64,000 bases of DNA from Dimorphilus gyrociliatus (GCA_904063045.1 CAJFCJ010000012.1:1240001-1304000), one strand, 5' to 3'; positions 34,917-44,494 are shown, numbered from the stretch's first letter. Program-made: numbers and translations. The notes: generated by a model from the sequence alone, not told the origin.

Positions 34917-37900
34917 ATGTTTGCTTATAGATTATTGATAGGTCATCAATATGCTCTGTTCTTCCTCTGTTTCGGACCATTCAGCTGTGTTGGAAAAGCA
35001 TCTGATTGTTGTTCAAACTCAAATGTGTCTGAAAGGACTCGAAATGGTTTATTAAAAGTGAATATAGGGGGATTATTTGAACTTGAAAATTCAACATCTA
35101 AACCAGAGTTTATAGCTGCAAATCTAGCAATCGATCATGTGAATAAAGGAGGATTCGTACCTGGGATTCGATTATCCTTATTCGAGAATGATACGAAGGT
35201 ATAGAGAAGAGGGAATTGTGTTTACTTTGACGCACAGTCGCTTTGAATATTTTATGAAATAACTATATACATCAATATCCATCGATATCTAATAACGAAT
35301 TTCAGTGTTGTATTACAAAACAAAGCATTCTTAAATCGCTTTGAATATATAGGATTATTAAGTATATTTAAAATATGAACAAAAAACCATTTATCTCTTC
35401 AAATGCATATTTCTCCTCTATATTGTATATATAATTTATTTAATTGCATAATTTCGTATTCTTAATTAACAGTGTGACCCCGGACGAGGAGCTGATGCCT
35501 TCTACGATTTTATGTACAAAAAACCAAAATTGTTCTTTCTAGTTGGAACAAAGTGTTCGGAGGTTGCTAAAGCTCTTGCTGAAATTGTACCCTACTGGAA
35601 TTTGCTATTTGTACATATAAGTCTTTGATCTAAAAATAAATTAAATTTATTAATAAAAAATATATAGAAATACATGTAACTAACTTCTAAAATAGTTAAA
35701 TGTCAAGGTTTTCTTGGCCTTTTGCAGATTTCCTACGGAGCGGTTTCACCAGCTTTAAGTGACCGGGAAAAATACCCAACATTCTTCCGTACAGCAGCAG
35801 CAGACTCTTCTCATAATGATGCTAGAATTCAATTTTTTAGAAATTTTAATTGGAGTACATTTGCAACAATTCATCAAGACCAAGAAATTTTCTCTCTGGT
35901 AAGATTTTACTCATTGGTATCTAGTTAAAGTTTATTATTTATCTTTATTTATGTCTTCATACTGTTTCCTCATTAGTTTATCTTTGTCATCAACTATTTT
36001 TTATTCCTACAATTTCTTTCTTTCATATCCACCCATTCAATTATCCACTTCTCTTTTACTCTCTTTGTCATTGTCGTCTCTGTCTTACTTTGTCGGCGTC
36101 TCTTTCTTTCTCTCTCTCTCTCTTTCGTTCTCTATCTCAAACGCACTCTTGCTGTTTATTAGCATACGAAACTAATTTACATTAACGACTTCACTTTATT
36201 ACCCCTCTTCCTTAATTTCATCTTCTTAGGGGAGTGATTTTTTCAATATCTATTTACATACTATGATTTTTCTTATAATATATATTAGGCAATTAATGAT
36301 CTTACGAGAGCTTTAGAAAAAGCGAATATGACTATTGAAATGGCAACTACTTTCCGGGGAACAGGATCAGATGTCAGTGTCAAAATGAACATGTTGAAGG
36401 TTTTATAAATAATGTATTAGATTTAACAAAAATTACGCAATTATATTGTTTCATTATTAGGAGGCCGATGCGAGAATTATCATAGGATCTTTTCAGGAGG
36501 ATGCTGCAAGACAAGTATTCTGTGAGGTTTGTAGCTTTCCCCTATCTACTTAAGTCCAAACTTAAATTAAAAAAAGATTATCTTTTTGATTAGGCTTATA
36601 AACTTGGATTACATAGTCCACGCTATATTTGGGTTTTACATGGTTGGTATTCTCCTTCATGGTGGAAAGACCCAAAGGGAACTACTTGTAAAAGTGAAGA
36701 ACTTTTAATAGCTGTAGATGGTTATATCAGCGTCGACAGCGTCTCAGTTTTTCGGGATGCGCAAACTTCTGACAAGGGAATTTCTGGATTAACTGCAGAC
36801 GAATTTGCCACATTACTAGCTAAGGAAACAAATCAAATTCCATCAATACACGCTCCACTAGCTTATGATGCCATATGGGCTTTAGCCTATGTTTTACGAA
36901 AATATCAATTAAATAGATATATACCAAAATTGAGCGATTTTAACTATTCAACTAAAAATGGCTCTGAAATTGTCGCACTCCTTTCAAATCTCCTGTCAAA
37001 CCTTGAATTTACTGGAGTATCGGTTAGTTTTCGTAGCTTGATACTTAATGTCTTAGTTTCATTTTCGTAAGAGCTTAATTTTTTTTTACGACGGCTTAAA
37101 GTATATAAGTTAATAAAAATTCAAATTAAGTAGAAAGATTTAATTGAGCTATTGACGAGAAATGGGATTACCAATATATTCTCGTTATTTTTAGGGCCCA
37201 GTTTCCTTTCATGGATCAGATAGGCAGGGCGTAAGCGTTTTGGAGCAAAATCAACGAGGTATGAAGAGAATAGTTGCTTTATTCTATCCAGAAAAGAATA
37301 GTCTTGATTTTAATTGTAAATCCTGTAAACAGATTTACTGGAAGAATGGAAAGGTTAAAGTGTAGAATAAATCTTGTCGTGCGTTTTAATTAACCTTTGA
37401 CATAATCAGGTTCCAAAAGATAAGAAAATGGTAATTACGCAAGCTCAACGAATTGATGAGGATACCTTCATAGCCGTCTGCGTTATATCTATATTTGGAA
37501 TTACGGTTGCTATATCATTTCTCATCTTTAATTTATATTACAGGAAATTAAAGTAAATAAAATCTATTATTAGTTTCAATAGCTAAGATGCTACTTATAA
37601 ATATTCTACTAGTTTTCATTGTCTTATTAAACAGATACATAAAATTATCTAGCCCTAAGTTGAACGATATGGCACTGATTGGTTGTATTCTGGTTTATAC
37701 GTCTGTAATACTATTTGGCCTAGATGATGGTAACGTTAAGGAGGAACATTTTGCGGTAATTTGTTCGGTAAGTCCAATCATTTGTGTTTAAGGCAAGAAG
37801 ATGAAGGAAACGCTCTTTTGTATTTGTATTTCTTGTTTTCTTTTTCTTTACAGTCTAGAGCATTTTTGCTTGCAGCCGGTTTCTCGGCAGCATTTGGCGC

Positions 37901-39709
37901 AATGTTTACGAAAACTTACAGAGTTCACGAGATTTTTACGAGAGCTCACAGTGGCATTATTAGAAGCAAGGTAATTAATCATTAGCCTACTTTTAATTAT
38001 TTCCTATTGAATTTTGCTGTAAATAAAGAAAGCTGAGATATAATTTACAGTTTATTTAAATATTCCTATATTATTCATTCTTCATTAATGTAAATACCAT
38101 TTCGTTTGTCTTCTTTTATCCTTTTCTTCTGTTTTACTGATCTCTAAAATAAAAGAAATTATTATTTACAGTTGCTCAAAGATAAACAGCTATTGACTAT
38201 AATCAGCGCTTTGCTGTTCATCGATTGCGCAATTATATTATTATGGGTGGCTGTCGATCCAATGAAACGGAGAACAAATAATTTCACAAAAGAGGTAGTA
38301 TTATGTAAAATCGGTAGTTTTCTTTTGATTTGTTTATTGATTCTATTTTTAAGAAAGTTTGCTATTTTAAAATATTTCTTCCATTTTTTAATCAAAATAG
38401 TCTGATGACGGTGATGTGACCTATATATACAAGATTTCGCATTGTGACAGTGAACATTCAGATACTTGGCTAGGGGCTCTTTATGCATACAAAGGCGCCT
38501 TATTAATATTTGGAGTCTATATGGCTTGGGAGACGAGACACGTAAAGATTCCTGCTCTCAATGATTCTCATTATATAGGTATGAACGTCTACAACGTCGT
38601 TCTCACTAGTGCAATAGTCGTGGCTCTTTCTAGTATTTTGGCCGATAGGTAAGTACTCTTTATGTACAGCCTTCCGCTGATGAAGAGAATTTTAATTAAG
38701 ATATGGACATTTTTTCACTAACATAAATTGCCGCAGGCCTACTCTTTGTTATGCCGTAGTTAGCGGACTAATTGTTGTATCTACTACCTCTTCTCTTGCT
38801 CTTCTCTTCTTACCGAAGGTTAGTTTGCCTTTTTGCAGTTGTATTATATCTATTCTATTGGAAGAGAACCAGTAAAATTTATCTTTACAATGATAAGGCT
38901 TATTAAGAATGAGAAATAGTAATTGTATACTGCAAAGTAAATAATATCAATTAAAGTAAATGTCAAATATTTTACTTATGTTATAAATGAGTAAAATTCT
39001 GGAAACTATTGAAAATTCCTTGTAAATGCCTTTACAGATCTATGCAATAGTTAAACACAACGGAAATCCAGTTATCGTATCGACTGGAATAACGGTTGAG
39101 GCAAACACCAGGCGTTTCGTAGTAGAAGACAAACGGGAAGTTTATTACCGAGCTCAAGTACAAAATCGCGTTTATAAACGCCAATTAGCCGAGGTTTTAT
39201 ATATTTTTCTTTTATTTTACTTTCTTCCATACTTACAAATTTCCTTTATGCCTGCCCATTAGCAATATTATTTTAATATACCCTTTTAGCTGGATCAAGA
39301 AATAATACATCTACAAGATCTGCTCTCCATTTCTGTTCCACCTGTGGGTCCTCTATCTGAAGATTTACTAGCTCTTTTGCCTATTGGGGAAGGCGAAAGC
39401 AGGGATGAGAATCAGTGCATGATAAGAGATTATGAACTAGAAAGAATCGAAAAGCGGGGAGAGACTAGTAAATTTTTGCGCAAATTTTCTGTAGCAACTC
39501 TTTTAGATAAGAACAATTGGTTATCTAATCAAGGAACTTGCAGTTTAGACGAGAATCGACGAAAATCAGAATGTTTTTATTCAAGTAACGTAGAAGATTT
39601 CCTAAAAGAGTGCCAAGATATCATAAAAAATAGGGATTACCGCGAAAATACACCAACGAGCTCAGTCAGAGGGATTTCTGAATCAAAAGAAGACGAAAGT
39701 TCTCTATGA
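34917..39709 (+). CDS. GABA-B-R3: Metabotropic GABA-B receptor, GABA-B-R3-like subtype (signal peptide, Venus flytrap domain, 7TM, coiled coil)
   Basis: Multi-exon GT-AG model: ENDTK|CDPGRG, GTKCSEVAKALAEIVPYWNL, ISYGAVSPALSDREKYPTFFRT, LSSPKLND, FGAMFTKTYRVHEIF, YAYKGALLIFGVYMAWETRHVKIPALNDSHYIG. The tail NTRRFVVEDKREVYYRAQVQNRVYKRQLAELDQEI closely matches my recollection of the invertebrate R3 subtype. Ends in ESSL*. Confidence 0.88.
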
Positions 39710-39830
39710 CTAATCTACATTCTCTGTATTTTCTCTGTATCAGTCTATTGACTTACATTTTTTGTTTCTTTTCTTAATATTTCTTTTTTTTTTCTTTTTT
39801 TTTTTTTACAAAAAACATACACTAAAAAGT

Positions 39831-42800
39831 TTATATTTGTAAAGCGTGCATAGAGTAGTGATTAGGAGCAGTCTTCTCCTCGATATATCGAAAAGGAGAT
39901 CTACCCGCAATAGGTTTTTGAACGATTGGTCTAAGAATCGGTTGTTCCGGTGATCGAATTGACTTTTTTATAAAAACGGGCCCTTGCTCGAATGATAAAT
40001 CTCTTTTCGGATTTGTTAATGAACTCTGTTGGAATTTAACAAAATCCGAGTGTAAATCTACCCAATCCTTCACTAAATTTGCTTCTTTTTCGATCGCTTC
40101 TACATCGATTGGTCCTTTTTCATAAGTAGGCCTATCATTCATCTCCTTTCGGCCCATTTCCGTGCTTGTCGAACTGGGTGATATATTGTCGAAAGCACTA
40201 TCCCGATTCGGTGATATATCTTTGCCTTTAAAATCATTCTTGGAATTGTCATTAATTTCTCTTTTACTTTGAGTATTTCGTGAATTATTTCGATTAAAGG
40301 TAACACGGCTATAATCGTTGGCATTCGTTTCAGCGGTAGGTGGCGCTTTCGATCGCCTTTGGCGAGACTTTCCTAAGTATTGGTGGAAATATAATCGGTC
40401 AGTGAGATCCCGGATAGTGGCATCTTTCTGAAAAATAAGATTATATATATTCTTGTTCTATGCTAATTACCCTTCAAGAAGATTAACTAGTATTTTGCAA
40501 CTACCTGTTTAATGGTTCTATTTAAATTCTCTATTTCTTGGCTGAGCATCTCTTCAGCATACATGTCCATATTATTTCCACTGCCTGAGCAACACATGAA
40601 CCAGGGTTTATCATTGGCCTGAGTCCTACGTAATGATTCAGTAAATAACAATCTGTTCGCATCGCTCGCTGTTCCTTGTGATCTTTGCTTTCGTGTTAAG
40701 TAAAGCTAAAAGTATAAAAGTTTTCAATTATATATTTCTTATTTATTTTCCCTTTCTATATTTTGTTTGGAAAAAAATCAAACCTTAGGAATGAAAGCTA
40801 AAGATAATGTAGAAACGCAACCGGACCAAGCTATTAAGCTTCCGATTGCGTACTTTATTGATGAACCAACACTGTCAGCTAACATTAATGGAACAGCAAT
40901 TATACCCAGGATAACAACAGCGATGATTAGAGCAAAAATTTCTTTAGCATCTTTTAAAGTTGGCAATGTAACGTGACGAGTTTTCCAAGTTGCCATTGAT
41001 CCGATTATTAATTGAATTAATTTGTATGCATAGATTAGACATATCCATAAAATTTGTAATGATGATCTACAATCTACAATCTGACGAATTTCATCCAAGA
41101 AATTTTCCGTCTATAAAGAAAATTCCTTGTATTATATATTTTTTTAAACATTAGCACGTGTGTTTACCTTGTAGCTCTTTCCCAGCAACTTTGCCTCACA
41201 TTTAATAGGATCAGCAAGAATCCAAGGTAACAAAATAATCAAATCGATAACTAAAAATGCGCAAACGGAAATCACGAGATGTTCGTCACGCGCCGTCTAT
41301 AATCAATTATAGGTAAACGACGTTAAGCATCAATAATTTTTTTACAACTAAAAAAGAGAACATTACCTTTCCATTGAAATTTATATTCTTAAATATTAAG
41401 TAAACACGCCAAGCCTTGGAGAATAAAGAGCAATAGACGATTGTAAATGAGCATGATAATAGAAATATTCCTGAAAAATGCTTGCTTATACTTTTTGGGA
41501 TAACGTTAGAAAATTTTAATAAGCCTATTGACATTTTAAAAATAGAGCTTTACCTGTACTAATACATTTTTCCATTACATGGAAACTAACTAATTTAGTA
41601 TCAATTCCAAATAGAACAAATGATATATTAGCTATAATTACCCCAATACAAATTATCACATTTATATTGGGACTTGTCATCTTGATCATTCTAGATAGGT
41701 GGATAAAGGAAATAAATTACTATACAATTGCTAACTCCATCTAGTGGTTACACAATATATATATGCAAATATATATATATATATATAAAGTATACATAAT
41801 CTAAATTAATGGCTTACTTGTCATTTCGCCACATAAGAATAAAAGTTATTATAACTATGGCGTAAAGAATGCAAATGAACATCAAAGCTGTCATAATGAT
41901 AAAAAGTGCTAAAGGTATGCCGTCAATTACTATTTTCTTTTCGGTGGTTGCTGGCTCCTTTAATAAGCCTGTTAAAAAAATTAGAATATAAAAAAACCTT
42001 AAATAGAATAGGAAATTTTTTCATCCTTTTATACCAGAATGCGCTATTAATTTTAAATTGTGTTCATATTTTCCAACAATCCTTATCCCTTCTTCGGTAA
42101 TTTCGTATATTGATGAATTAATTATTCTTTTATTATCGTTTCCAAATTCCAATCGACCAGTTAGACCTTCCATAGTATTTGTTTGAATAATCAATGAAAA
42201 ATTTGATAAGAATTGCTTTCTCGGCAGAGAATTATCCAGGGTCTGCATTCTAATTAGAGCATTTCCAGTAACAAGAGCAGCGTCGAAGGCGTAAAAGGCA
42301 TCTCTTTCGATGATGTTAGTTAGTTTATCATTAAACTTTTTCATTAAGCTTCTTTTAAGCTTTTCAGCCGACTATATGAAAAAGAAAGTGCAAAAAGAAT
42401 GGCACAACGGGCTCTTGAATATTTAAATTAAAAATAGCGTTGACAGATGGGAAACTTACGTTGTTGCTCTTAAAGTTCTCCTTTGCTACTACTAATATGC
42501 TATTTGTGACCTTTTTACCTTCACAAAGGAATAAATTAACTCTTTTTTCTAAATTAACTACTACGCTCGGAATAATCCATATATTTCTTCTAGGTATAAG
42601 GTCACGCTTTATTGTACAAGCTAAGTTCGAGAGTAAATGATCCCTTACGAAAACAAGAATAGGCCTAGTATTTGTATCCTGTTAAAGAAAAAAAAAAGTT
42701 TATAATTGGTATTAAGCTGATATTATTGTTATTGTTTGATTTAGTAATAATTACATGAATTGCTTGAATAGTGGAGTTTACGTTCCAAAAAACAGATACT

Positions 42801-43421
42801 TGTACAAGAAGCCCATTTTTTATGAGATAATCCTTTATTTGGTAGATAAATTTTAAATGAAAATCGTCATACAATAGCCAAACAGAATTCCATTGATTTT
42901 CTGCGAGAAGAGCCGTTACAGAGTTTAAAATATTCAAAACGTTTATTCCAGTAGAGAAGAGGTTTTTATGCCCTCTGGTAATCGTTGAATGAATCGTGAT
43001 TTGGGGTAGTATATTTTGAAAAAATCCTATATTAGGGTCATGACCCTGACAAAAATCCCCTAAAAGAATCTTTTGACCTGAAGAGGAAGAAGAAGAAGAA
43101 GAAGAGGGCGTAGAATAGTAGGACAGGGCTGATTCTTGTAATTTAATTAATTCCTCTTGAGTATTGAAACACTGTAGAATACGAACTTATTTAGCAGATA
43201 GTTATCGATTGATTTATTGATTGATTTTCATTCAATTTAAAAGAAGGAAAATAAAAAAAGAATCAAGCATAATTAACGTTAGAGCGTGGGAGTTTATCTT
43301 TATTTTGATTTTAATTTAGTTGATATATTATGAGAGAATATACGGTTTACAGTATATTATACAATTTAATGCATATTTACACTATAATTGTGTATATATC
43401 TATAAGGAGACCTCAAAAAGG

Positions 43422-43454
<33 letters not shown>

Positions 43455-43781
43455 TGTATATATAAAGATTCTTATAATAAAAATATGTGAATATAAAATA
43501 AATATAAAAATGAAAAGGTTGAAGAAATGATAATAAAAGTATATAAATAAAGAAATAAATCTTACTCGGGTATCAATAAAGTTCCAAACGATGCCGCCAT
43601 AACTTGAATTTAATAAACCCAAGTATTCGAATGCGTGAAGAATACCCTCCCTTTGAGCCTCTCCATTGATTCCCTTCTCCCCGGACAACGGTAGGAGAAT
43701 AGTGATATTAGAATTTATAGTCACCGATAAATTGGCACTATAGGTGGCGAGTAATAAACTGAGAAGTATTCTGTTCGCCAT
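39831..43781 (-). CDS. Highly divergent GABA-B-like class C GPCR (degenerate flytrap domain, intact 7TM, C-terminal coiled coil)
   Basis: Exon 1 (43566-43781) has a signal peptide and ILLPLSG...FIDTR, splicing in phase to 43171 (CFN..., the DTxC motif). Further motifs: AFYAFDAALV, EGLTGRLEFGND, MIKMTSPNIN, LFSKAWRVYLIF, IDLIILLPWILADP, LIYAYK...TWKTRHVTLPTLKDAKEI, SLAFIPK, coiled coil MLSQEIENLNRTIKQKDATIRDLTDRL. Confidence 0.82.
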
Positions 43782-44494
43782 CGCGTTGTATCCTAGACTG
43801 TCTGAAGGTGGAACATTGACTCTTTTATTTTTAAATGTTAAAAATAAATAAATAAATTGAATTGTAATGAATAAGAATAGTCGTGAGAAACTCTTACAAC
43901 GCCCGATACGTGTTTATTTACCTGGTGACCAGACGCAAGCAACTATAAATGTAATCAATATTCGTTCCACTACTTTATAATAGCGCCCTAGCTGCCATTT
44001 TAGGATATATTTAAACATACAATTAAGGTGTATAATTAGGGCTTATCGTATTTGTTTTTCATTAAACGTGCTACGGAATTTCATGTAGGCTCAAAATTTC
44101 CAATAAGAATGCTCTTGACAATCGTTTATATATACAACTTTTATACAGGGGATTTCTTTTTTTAATTAAAAGCGCTTTGTACGAAAGGCAAAATCCGACA
44201 AAATATTTGCCTTAATGTTAATTATTCAAGTGTCTGCTTAACAAAAATTATCAAAGGCTCCGTCGTTTCAAGTTAGGTGTATTGATCCTTTAAGTCATTT
44301 ACATTTAGCGCTTCCATAGAGTTTTTTTTTTCTTTTTTCCCTCTATTCTCATGTGACTAATCTATTTGTGTAATTAGACAGGTTCTAAATGGATTTTTAA
44401 CCTTCCTTCATCAATCTCTATCTGTCTTTTCTCCGCAGTTTTTCATCTCTCTTCCTGACTAGTTCCGCTATTGCTCTTAACCTGTCGCAATCTT

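Follow-up and report, generated by a model that had tools for sequence, protein, structure and literature searches.

In the small marine worm Dimorphilus gyrociliatus, two related receptor genes of brain type, both class C GPCR genes that are intact and spliced, meet tail to tail within the stretch of 64,000 nucleotides that was analysed (GCA_904063045.1 CAJFCJ010000012.1:1240001-1304000; the window). The locus would hold two paralogues of the GABA-B family, an ancient pair transcribed towards each other, in which the minus-strand gene acts as a GPR156-type dimer of its own and not as the obligate partner of its neighbour; this reading is given a probability of about 0.5. Judged by sequence, the plus-strand gene is a true annelid orthologue of GABA-B-R3 (R3), and the minus-strand gene belongs to a previously undescribed spiralian group that is probably sister to the GPR156-like receptors. 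A sequence-only reading of the same DNA had reported two convergent GABA-B-family genes with stop codons 121 bp apart, which the gene models and the spacer sequence bear out, and had suggested that the neighbour could be a subunit dedicated to R3, a suggestion that fares less well. Table 1 gives the features of both genes.

Table 1. Features of the R3 gene, the spacer and the minus-strand gene (positions counted from the first letter of the window).
Feature	Position	Strand	Basis or remark
GABA-B-R3 orthologue gene, 15 exons, 925 aa	34917-39709	+	open frame, GT..AG at every intron
R3 exons 1-5	34917-35198, 35473-35610, 35728-35898, 36289-36399, 36461-36526	+	
R3 exons 6-10	36594-37022, 37195-37353, 37410-37552, 37635-37767, 37854-37970	+	
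R3 exons 11-15	38172-38294, 38401-38648, 38737-38818, 39038-39193, 39290-39709	+	
R3 flytrap lobe-1 motifs: TKCSEV 35548-35565, YGAVSPAL 35734-35757	35548-35757	+	kept throughout R3 clade
R3 seven-helix domain with K3.50, R3.53, D6.35, F3.44, S6.50	37458-38818	+	
R3 coil, residues 759-798, interrupted by intron 39194-39289	39110-39325	+	heptad scan, PDB match
R3 stop codon	39707-39709	+	
Spacer between the two stop codons, 121 bp, T-rich tract	39710-39830	.	sequence read
Flytrap-bearing GPR156-related receptor gene, 11 exons, 944 aa	43781-39831	-	open frame, GT..AG at every intron
Minus-gene exons 1-4 (high to low)	43781-43566, 43171-42755, 42678-42460, 42371-42035	-	
Minus-gene exons 5-8	41968-41818, 41690-41554, 41470-41367, 41296-41168	-	
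Minus-gene exons 9-11	41110-40784, 40705-40505, 40427-39831	-	
Minus-gene flytrap lobe-1 segment: GDFCQGHD 43060-43037, ITIHSTIT 43000-42977	42977-43060	-	alignment
Minus-gene seven-helix domain with K3.50, R3.53, D6.35, Y3.44, G6.50	40784-41918	-	
Membrane-proximal block F-(S/T)-E-S-x-(R/K)-(R/K)-T, then Cys cluster	40586-40651	-	conserved, clade alignment
Minus-gene coil, residues 727-759, interrupted by intron 40428-40504	40389-40564	-	heptad scan score 0.88
RQRR, R-x-R-type motif, 9 residues past coil	40364-40353	-	sequence read
Minus-gene stop codon	39833-39831	-	

The plus-strand gene had already been taken for R3, and its position in the seven-helix tree agrees: it falls inside the R3 clade, apart from GABA-B2-type and other family sequences, with a support of 100/100, among sequences of Sarcophaga, Iphiclides, Ranatra, Penaeus, Bulinus, Pinctada and Lingula, in a tree whose R3 sample is without deuterostomes and which includes no true GABA-B1 reference. 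Its last five splice junctions, together with the junction 37767/37854, can be read from spliced RNA-type contigs of the same organism. Against Pfam 7tm_3 (cut-off 33.5) its exon 12 scores 55.5 bits, and the listed differences between this exon and its relatives (20/20) all lie at third codon positions. The flytrap lobe-1 exon scores 56.7 bits against Pfam ANF_receptor, and in translation a short stalk without a Cys-rich module joins the flytrap to the helices. The best solved relatives of the protein are GABA-B2 and then GABA-B1. The residue that follows Gly-Ala in the R3 motif is Val, at a position where GABA-B1 presumably carries a ligand-contacting Ser. The best heptad window starts 39 residues past TM7, and the coil exon gives a match at E 1.5e-7 to PDB 5gwm_B, the solved coil of Drosophila R3; the coil motif is kept across the R3 clade, arthropods and molluscs included, and was not found in GABA-B2 tails. 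With Drosophila dGB3 the annelid protein shares its clade, the lobe-1 motif and the coil motif R-R-F-V-V-x-D-x-R-E ... V-Q-N-R-V-Y-K; it differs in having a conserved tail-to-tail neighbour, of whose clade no named arthropod member was found. R3, reportedly known since 2001, occurs across the protostomes; its lobe-1 motif resembles that of GABA-B1, its coil is its own and deeply conserved, and the D. gyrociliatus locus shows that it is not insect-specific. In 2025 a paper from a GABA-B structure laboratory still called the function of Drosophila dGB3 unknown (PMC12499500), in agreement with the earlier remark that invertebrate R3 is not known to have an established obligate partner.

The junctions of the minus-strand gene agree with spliced contigs of close relatives (~90-93% identical), most of them exactly and the first weakly. 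Exon 9 scores 49.4 bits against Pfam 7tm_3 (cut-off 33.5), and K3.50 and D6.35, which form the ionic lock of class C, do not vary within the clade to which the gene belongs. The protein has a signal peptide and a flytrap of ~390 residues, followed by a short stalk without a Cys-rich module. Against ANF_receptor this flytrap reaches only 17.9 bits, on one exon, and a search of the PDB with the lobe-1 exon gave nothing at E up to 10; the Lingula and Tubulanus orthologues carry ANF_receptor, and the flytrap is constrained, with 24% identity to Lingula across 361 aligned residues. In alignment, the amino-acid-site motif of the S-Y-G-x-x-S-P-A-L-S type is replaced by a deletion in all flytrap-bearing members of the clade. 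The contrast drawn earlier between this flytrap, devoid of ligand-site motifs, and that of R3, which keeps TKCSEV and YGAVSPAL, holds both at these coordinates and clade-wide.

The best relatives of the minus-strand gene are sequences of Lingula, Capitella, Tubulanus and Watersipora and one metagenome sequence. The resulting clade is spiralian (annelids, a brachiopod, a nemertean and a bryozoan; support 100/99), and its members are annotated only as hypothetical or mis-named proteins; given this clade of orthologues, a lineage-specific receptor was rejected. The sequence-only reading had rightly seen a divergent class C receptor with a motif-less flytrap, a trait found throughout the clade. 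Its label of ‘GABA-B-family’ stands in that the gene is a class C receptor of the GABA-B branch, but the gene is more precisely GPR156-related. In the seven-helix tree, which took in invertebrate GPR156-like proteins and left out vertebrate GPR156, the clade joins the invertebrate GPR156-like receptors at 99/97. This join links two long branches, and the AU test does not reject a placement of the clade beside R3 (p = 0.108), both of which count against a GPR156-type paralogue. Membership of GABA-B2 was rejected, the gene lying outside that clade (98* in one tree; 91/87 in the seven-helix tree). The best solved relatives of its seven-helix domain are GABA-B2 and then GABA-B1, and human GPR156 comes below GABA-B2 in pairwise score; in a language-model look-alike search, chordate GPR156 comes first (0.92). 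Y3.44 within F-T-(L/I)-V-Y-G, and V-T-L-P before TM6, are common to the minus-strand clade and the GPR156-like clade. Tubulanus carries a gene of each kind, and the two clades are therefore paralogues, not orthologues. In arthropods and molluscs, which hold R3, no named member of the minus-strand clade was found.

Hearing requires GPR156, an orphan receptor for which, to our knowledge, there is no explanation of how a class C receptor without a flytrap arose. In the seven-helix tree the minus-strand clade is nearest to the invertebrate GPR156-like relatives of this receptor, with the two blocks just described and a coil motif past TM7 in common, and the members from D. gyrociliatus, Lingula and Tubulanus have G6.50, as GPR156 does (PMC11621567). 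Unlike GPR156, which is without a flytrap, the clade has kept both signal peptide and flytrap, and unlike human GPR156, in which the ionic lock is lost (S6.35), it has kept D6.35 (PMC11621567). Human GPR156 forms a homodimer that is constitutively active (PMC11621567). By analogy, the minus-strand protein may couple to G proteins as a dimer that its own coil holds together; constitutive behaviour, though, cannot be assumed for the clade, since D6.35 and the flytrap are kept. The locus defines a probable spiralian sister group of the GPR156-like receptors that still has its flytrap, and by implication GPR156 would descend from a flytrap-bearing, GABA-B-like ancestor.

A coil past TM7 had been claimed for both genes, and the heptad scan finds one in each, that of R3 being corroborated by the match to 5gwm_B. 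In the minus-strand gene the best heptad window starts 54 residues past TM7, with hydrophobic residues at 7/8 core positions, and the coil residues E, I, L, K, K, I, R, L, D, R and L are invariant across five orthologue sequences (four species and the metagenome sequence). This coil is homologous to that of echinoderm and hemichordate GPR156-like proteins, the motif E-K-(D/E)-x-(T/S)-I-(R/K)-x-L being common to the two clades, and has no match among solved GABA-B coils at E up to 10. An invariant Lys occupies a core d position, which would be unusual for a stable homodimer and speaks against a dimer of the GPR156 type.

At the 3' side, the R3 contig extends to 39771 and the minus-gene contigs of relatives extend down to 39700-39725; the 3' UTRs of the two genes probably overlap in the spacer. 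Both genes are present in the same RNA-type runs of relatives. The tail-to-tail pair is kept in Lingula (two scaffolds) and in the invertebrate assembly L014, and no other flanking genes are common to the genomes with the pair. Conserved linkage, the lack of which the sequence-only reading had set against its own proposal, is thus found in these two, but synteny is partial: within 10 kb the linkage is absent from Capitella, Tubulanus, Watersipora, Bulinus and two other contigs (five lineages). The adjacency would go back to the ancestor that annelids and brachiopods share, could be what is left of a local duplication in inverted orientation, and might have been maintained by shared regulation or overlapping 3' ends. 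Simple ancestry would not call for such close linkage in three genomes that have no further neighbours in common, and in that respect the linkage fits poorly with an independently acting paralogue. The recurrence of the gene pair in a brachiopod makes a working link worth testing and is no demonstration of protein pairing.

The main alternative, which seems unlikely, is a dedicated spiralian heterodimer: R3 would bind the ligand, and its non-binding neighbour would be held in the ER by an R-x-R motif until the two coils pair. That spiralians have in these two a third GABA-B-type heterodimer, obligate and not yet described, the neighbour coupling to the G protein and coil and basic motif serving quality control, is likewise doubtful. 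The two flytraps suit the GABA-B pattern in which one subunit binds the ligand and the other does not, the coils of both genes are deeply conserved, and both the exclusive linkage in three genomes and the presence in the same RNA-type runs would suit a pair of partners, as would a dGB3 whose function is still sought (PMC12499500). RQRR was indeed found just distal to the minus-strand coil, in a geometry like that of the GABA-B1 signal, and Lingula and the metagenome member likewise have R-x-R past their coils. The resemblance to the GABA-B1 RSRR system, in which the GABA-B1/GABA-B2 coil masks the retention signal, namely an R-x-R-R motif directly past a coil in the cytoplasmic tail (PMC12499500), goes no further: the basic motif is conserved among orthologues neither in position nor in sequence, its carrier, unlike GABA-B1, has a flytrap without the binding motif, and in the alignment R-x-R is absent past the coil of Capitella, Tubulanus and Watersipora. 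With R-x-R in three of the six clade members, the proposed retention signal of GABA-B1 type loses ground. The Drosophila retention signal is found in dGB2, within ICL2 (PMC12499500), and for this reason the location of such signals is evolutionarily labile. The phyletic distribution further weakens a role dedicated to R3: the coil type of the neighbour is common to deuterostome GPR156-like proteins and the R3 sample is without deuterostomes, while the R3 coil is kept in arthropods and molluscs, with no named member of the neighbour clade found there. The second chain of the solved coil entry 5GWM differs from R3 and is not R2-like, which makes some other partner probable for R3 in flies. The heptad registers, compared by eye, display no obvious core or charge complementarity, and the lineages without the linkage also weigh against obligate partners. 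The conserved gene pair nevertheless offers a concrete and cheap pairing hypothesis: were the heterodimer true, R3 would gain a partner and a function, and either outcome bears on how the family distributed subunit roles and quality control.

Less likely again, the neighbour could pair with a GABA-B1- or GABA-B2-type subunit encoded elsewhere in this genome, as an alternative non-binding or modulatory subunit whose adjacency to R3 is incidental. The ranking of GABA-B2 and GABA-B1 as its best solved seven-helix relatives agrees with such a role, as does a flytrap predicted to be of the non-binding type; like GABA-B2, the protein is without the amino-acid-site motif and has a coil past TM7. It differs from GABA-B2, however, in lying outside that clade and in having a coil dissimilar to the solved GABA-B2 coils, with none of the solved GABA-B coils matching it even at the permissive threshold given above.

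That the minus-strand gene is a decaying, functionless duplicate lying beside R3 by chance is highly improbable: a lobe-1 exon without a detectable solved relative, a long terminal branch in the tree and one same-organism run with no contig covering the gene would be in keeping with decay, but the frame is unbroken over 944 codons, its splice sites are canonical, close relatives yield spliced transcripts, orthologues in four phyla hold the coil and seven-helix residues invariant, and the same pairing recurs in three genomes.

As the sequence-only reading had observed, two receptor genes converge here, with stop codons 121 bp apart. Both are complete and lie between 34917 and 43781; the surrounding invertebrate DNA is AT-rich, and its introns are very short (56-394 bp across both genes). 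The plus gene is firmly identified as an orthologue of GABA-B-R3 (R3), and its neighbour, the minus gene, as a member of an undescribed flytrap-bearing clade, probably the sister group of the GPR156-like receptors, the flytrap being the ANF_receptor domain. Splice junctions were taken from public contigs where present and otherwise from frame and splice consensus; database searches were made with single exons or orthologue proteins, and joined translations were used for local alignment, trees and tblastn against the fetched loci. The reading favoured here, with a probability of roughly one half, is that the neighbour would act as an independent receptor dimerizing through its own coil, and that its linkage to R3 is inherited and possibly co-regulated.

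Features of the convergent receptor pair, in positions of the window
Feature	Position	Strand	Details
Plus gene (R3 orthologue)	34917-39709	+	15 exons, 925 residues; GT..AG at all introns
Minus gene (GPR156-related)	43781-39831	-	11 exons, 944 residues; GT..AG at all introns
Spacer between stop codons, with long T-rich tract	39710-39830		
RQRR motif of minus gene	40353-40364	-	R-x-R type, 9 residues past coil
Nine-serine run	43067-43100	-	minus-gene exon 2, inserted in flytrap lobe 1
AT/TA microsatellite	43330-43530		much of minus-gene intron 1 (longest, 394 bp)
Spliced plus-gene contig, same-organism run X4	37853-39771	+	five junctions exact
Lower ends of relatives' minus-gene contigs	39700-39725	-	
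Region of probable 3' UTR overlap	39700-39830		

Exons of the plus gene match ANF_receptor and 7tm_3 in Pfam, and also GABA-B2 and GABA-B1 structures, and both trees place the gene, with full support, in one clade with sequences of fly, butterfly, bug, shrimp, snail, oyster, octopod and Lingula. Members of this clade share a conserved tail motif (G-N-P-V ... R-R-F-V-V-x-D-x-R-E ... V-Q-N-R-V-Y-K-R), which was not found in GABA-B2 tails, and retain C-S-(E/D)-V and (S/F)-(Y/F/H)-(G/A)-x-x-S-P-A-L-S-D-R. Exon matches, placement and tail motif together uphold the R3 identity first proposed for this gene; on clade membership and conserved motifs, R3 is a long-established gene of protostomes rather than an insect novelty. 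The public model of P0145, an R3-like protein of Sarcophaga, omits most of the conserved R3 tail from TM7 to N-R-V-Y-K, probably through an annotation gap.

A lineage-specific placement, which the sequence-only reading had named as telling against a partnership with R3, does not apply to the minus gene. When its TM5-7 exon was searched exhaustively without a profile, 21 representatives fell below 1e-10, scoring well above most of the GABA-B family, and its clade (support 100/99 in the seven-helix tree) includes two Lingula proteins (one automatically named ‘GABA-B subunit 2’, the other ‘uncharacterized’), a hypothetical protein of Capitella, uncharacterized proteins of Tubulanus and Watersipora, and a metagenome sequence. 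Against the minus gene these members reach about double their scores against R3. Word-index searches returned at least three proteins with the clade alignment and at least four with the region, counts that, under word and length limits, are no gauge of the spread of the clade; the searched literature holds no mention of it. Identity within the clade is 34-45% in the seven-helix domain and 35-46% over the first 80 tail residues, and falls near zero in the distal tail; the minus-gene flytrap is 24% identical to that of Lingula over 361 aligned residues and 29% to that of the truncated Tubulanus model over 208 alignable residues. Invariant throughout are K3.50, R3.53, D6.35, a membrane-proximal F-(S/T)-E-S block and a Cys cluster. 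In the coil, which comprises four heptads, the residues E, I, L, K, K, I, R, L, D, R and L do not vary, and one such Lys occupies a core d position. The lack of a ligand-site motif in the minus-gene flytrap was borne out and proved clade-wide: flytrap landmarks are kept, and the segment carrying the amino-acid-site motif in R3 and its relatives is deleted in every member. The nine-serine run of the minus gene is not present in the Lingula and Tubulanus orthologues.

In the seven-helix tree, built under LG+C20 PMSF and containing neither vertebrate GPR156 nor true GABA-B1, the minus clade groups with a GPR156-like clade at 99/97, both clades being long-branched. This GPR156-like clade (99/96) holds Saccoglossus, Ptychodera, Amphiura, Asterias, Tubulanus, Pinctada and Littorina sequences. 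It shares with the minus clade Y3.44 in F-T-(L/I)-V-Y-G and V-T-L-P-S-(L/M)-x-D before TM6, whereas R3 and GABA-B2 carry A-F-G and V-(S/K)-I-P-A-L-N-D instead; the coil motif L-K-x-x-L-x-E-K-(D/E)-x-(T/S)-I-(R/K)-x-L is likewise common to the two. In a language-model look-alike search with a Lingula minus-clade member, chordate GPR156 came top (0.92), and the Asterias GPR156-like protein can be aligned with human GPR156 for 76 residues beyond TM7. Pairwise scores rank GABA-B2 above GPR156 for the minus gene, and an alternative tree in which the minus clade groups with R3 was 12.7 log-likelihood units worse but not rejected (AU p = 0.108). Since Tubulanus holds one gene of each kind, the minus and GPR156-like clades are, on gene content, paralogous. 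Human GPR156 acts as a homodimer with constitutive activity (PMC11621567); D6.35 and the flytrap domain, both kept in the minus clade, set that clade apart from it. Orthology of the minus gene to GABA-B1, prompted by its RSRR-like tail, was rejected because the flytrap motif is missing, the best solved matches are to GABA-B2 before GABA-B1, and the gene sits beside GPR156-like receptors in a tree that held no true GABA-B1 reference. Flytrap-less GPR156-like genes, with the coil motif of the echinoderm and hemichordate ones, occur in Tubulanus (P0199), Pinctada (P0200) and Littorina (P0201), so that GPR156-type receptors are not confined to deuterostomes.

Absence of conserved linkage, also named beforehand as adverse, was not encountered. 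On Lingula scaffold 257 a convergent R3-like gene (split in two by annotation) lies 678 bp beyond a minus-clade gene, and on scaffold 57 a convergent minus-clade gene lies about 2 kb beyond R3, the two scaffolds being about 90% identical copies and counted as one lineage. In L014, a locus from an invertebrate assembly, a convergent R3 coil exon, 70% identical to that of the window, comes after a minus-clade gene. When the window flanks were compared by tblastx with every fetched locus, no further common flanking gene was found, so that conservation is limited to the pair itself. The two genes are non-adjacent within 10-kb flanks in Capitella, Tubulanus, Watersipora, Bulinus and two further contigs. 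From this distribution we infer that the tail-to-tail arrangement was in place before annelids and brachiopods diverged and was repeatedly lost afterwards. The public Lingula annotation lists the minus-clade gene as ‘GABA-B receptor subunit 2’, and splits one scaffold's R3-like gene and the other's minus-clade gene into two models each (L002, 26333-32658; L008, 34377-42376).

Spliced contigs for both genes were found in three runs from close relatives (~90-93% identical), showing ten minus-gene junctions; contig support is weak for the first, that of the microsatellite-bearing intron 1. In plus-gene exon 12 all 20 of the 20 listed differences from the relatives fall at third codon positions, which, at the sequence level, indicates purifying selection. 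No minus-gene contig was found for 37801-43800 in X4, the one same-organism run examined and a small data set, in which such a gap proves nothing. The 3' UTRs of the two genes probably overlap, because the plus contig runs to 39771 and the relatives' minus contigs extend down to 39700-39725; canonical AATAAA was found on neither strand of the spacer.

That the neighbour and R3 form a heterodimer, as the sequence-only reading proposed, is possible but unlikely. The contrast of a binding and a non-binding flytrap suits the rule of the GABA-B family, coils are conserved in both genes, the linkage is conserved, RQRR is placed like the GABA-B1 signal described in PMC12499500, and the function of Drosophila R3 (dGB3) is still called unknown there. 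Against such pairing, just three of the six minus-clade members have an R-x-R motif behind the coil. Heptad registers read by eye, evidence neither way, reveal no clear complementarity of the two coils. Moreover, the neighbour's coil type is that of deuterostome GPR156-like proteins, whereas the R3 sample includes no deuterostome, and R3 of arthropods and molluscs retains its own coil in these groups, where no named minus-clade member was found. In PDB entry 5GWM the Drosophila R3 coil is paired with another chain, distinct from R3 and unlike R2: a GABA-B2 tail matches the separate R2 coil entry 5x9x_B but not this chain, whose identity bears directly on the partner of R3. No paper citing 5GWM was found in the searchable literature. 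PDB searches with exon 10 of the minus gene and with the Lingula tail matched no GABA-B or GPR156 coil, and Pfam gave only sub-threshold generic coil families for the tails, GBR2_CC being uninformative as it missed even the Anopheles GABA-B2 control. Pairing of the neighbour with another GABA-B subunit is less probable still, and a dead minus gene is highly improbable, pseudogene status being rejected on the intact frame, the spliced transcripts and the conserved orthologues.
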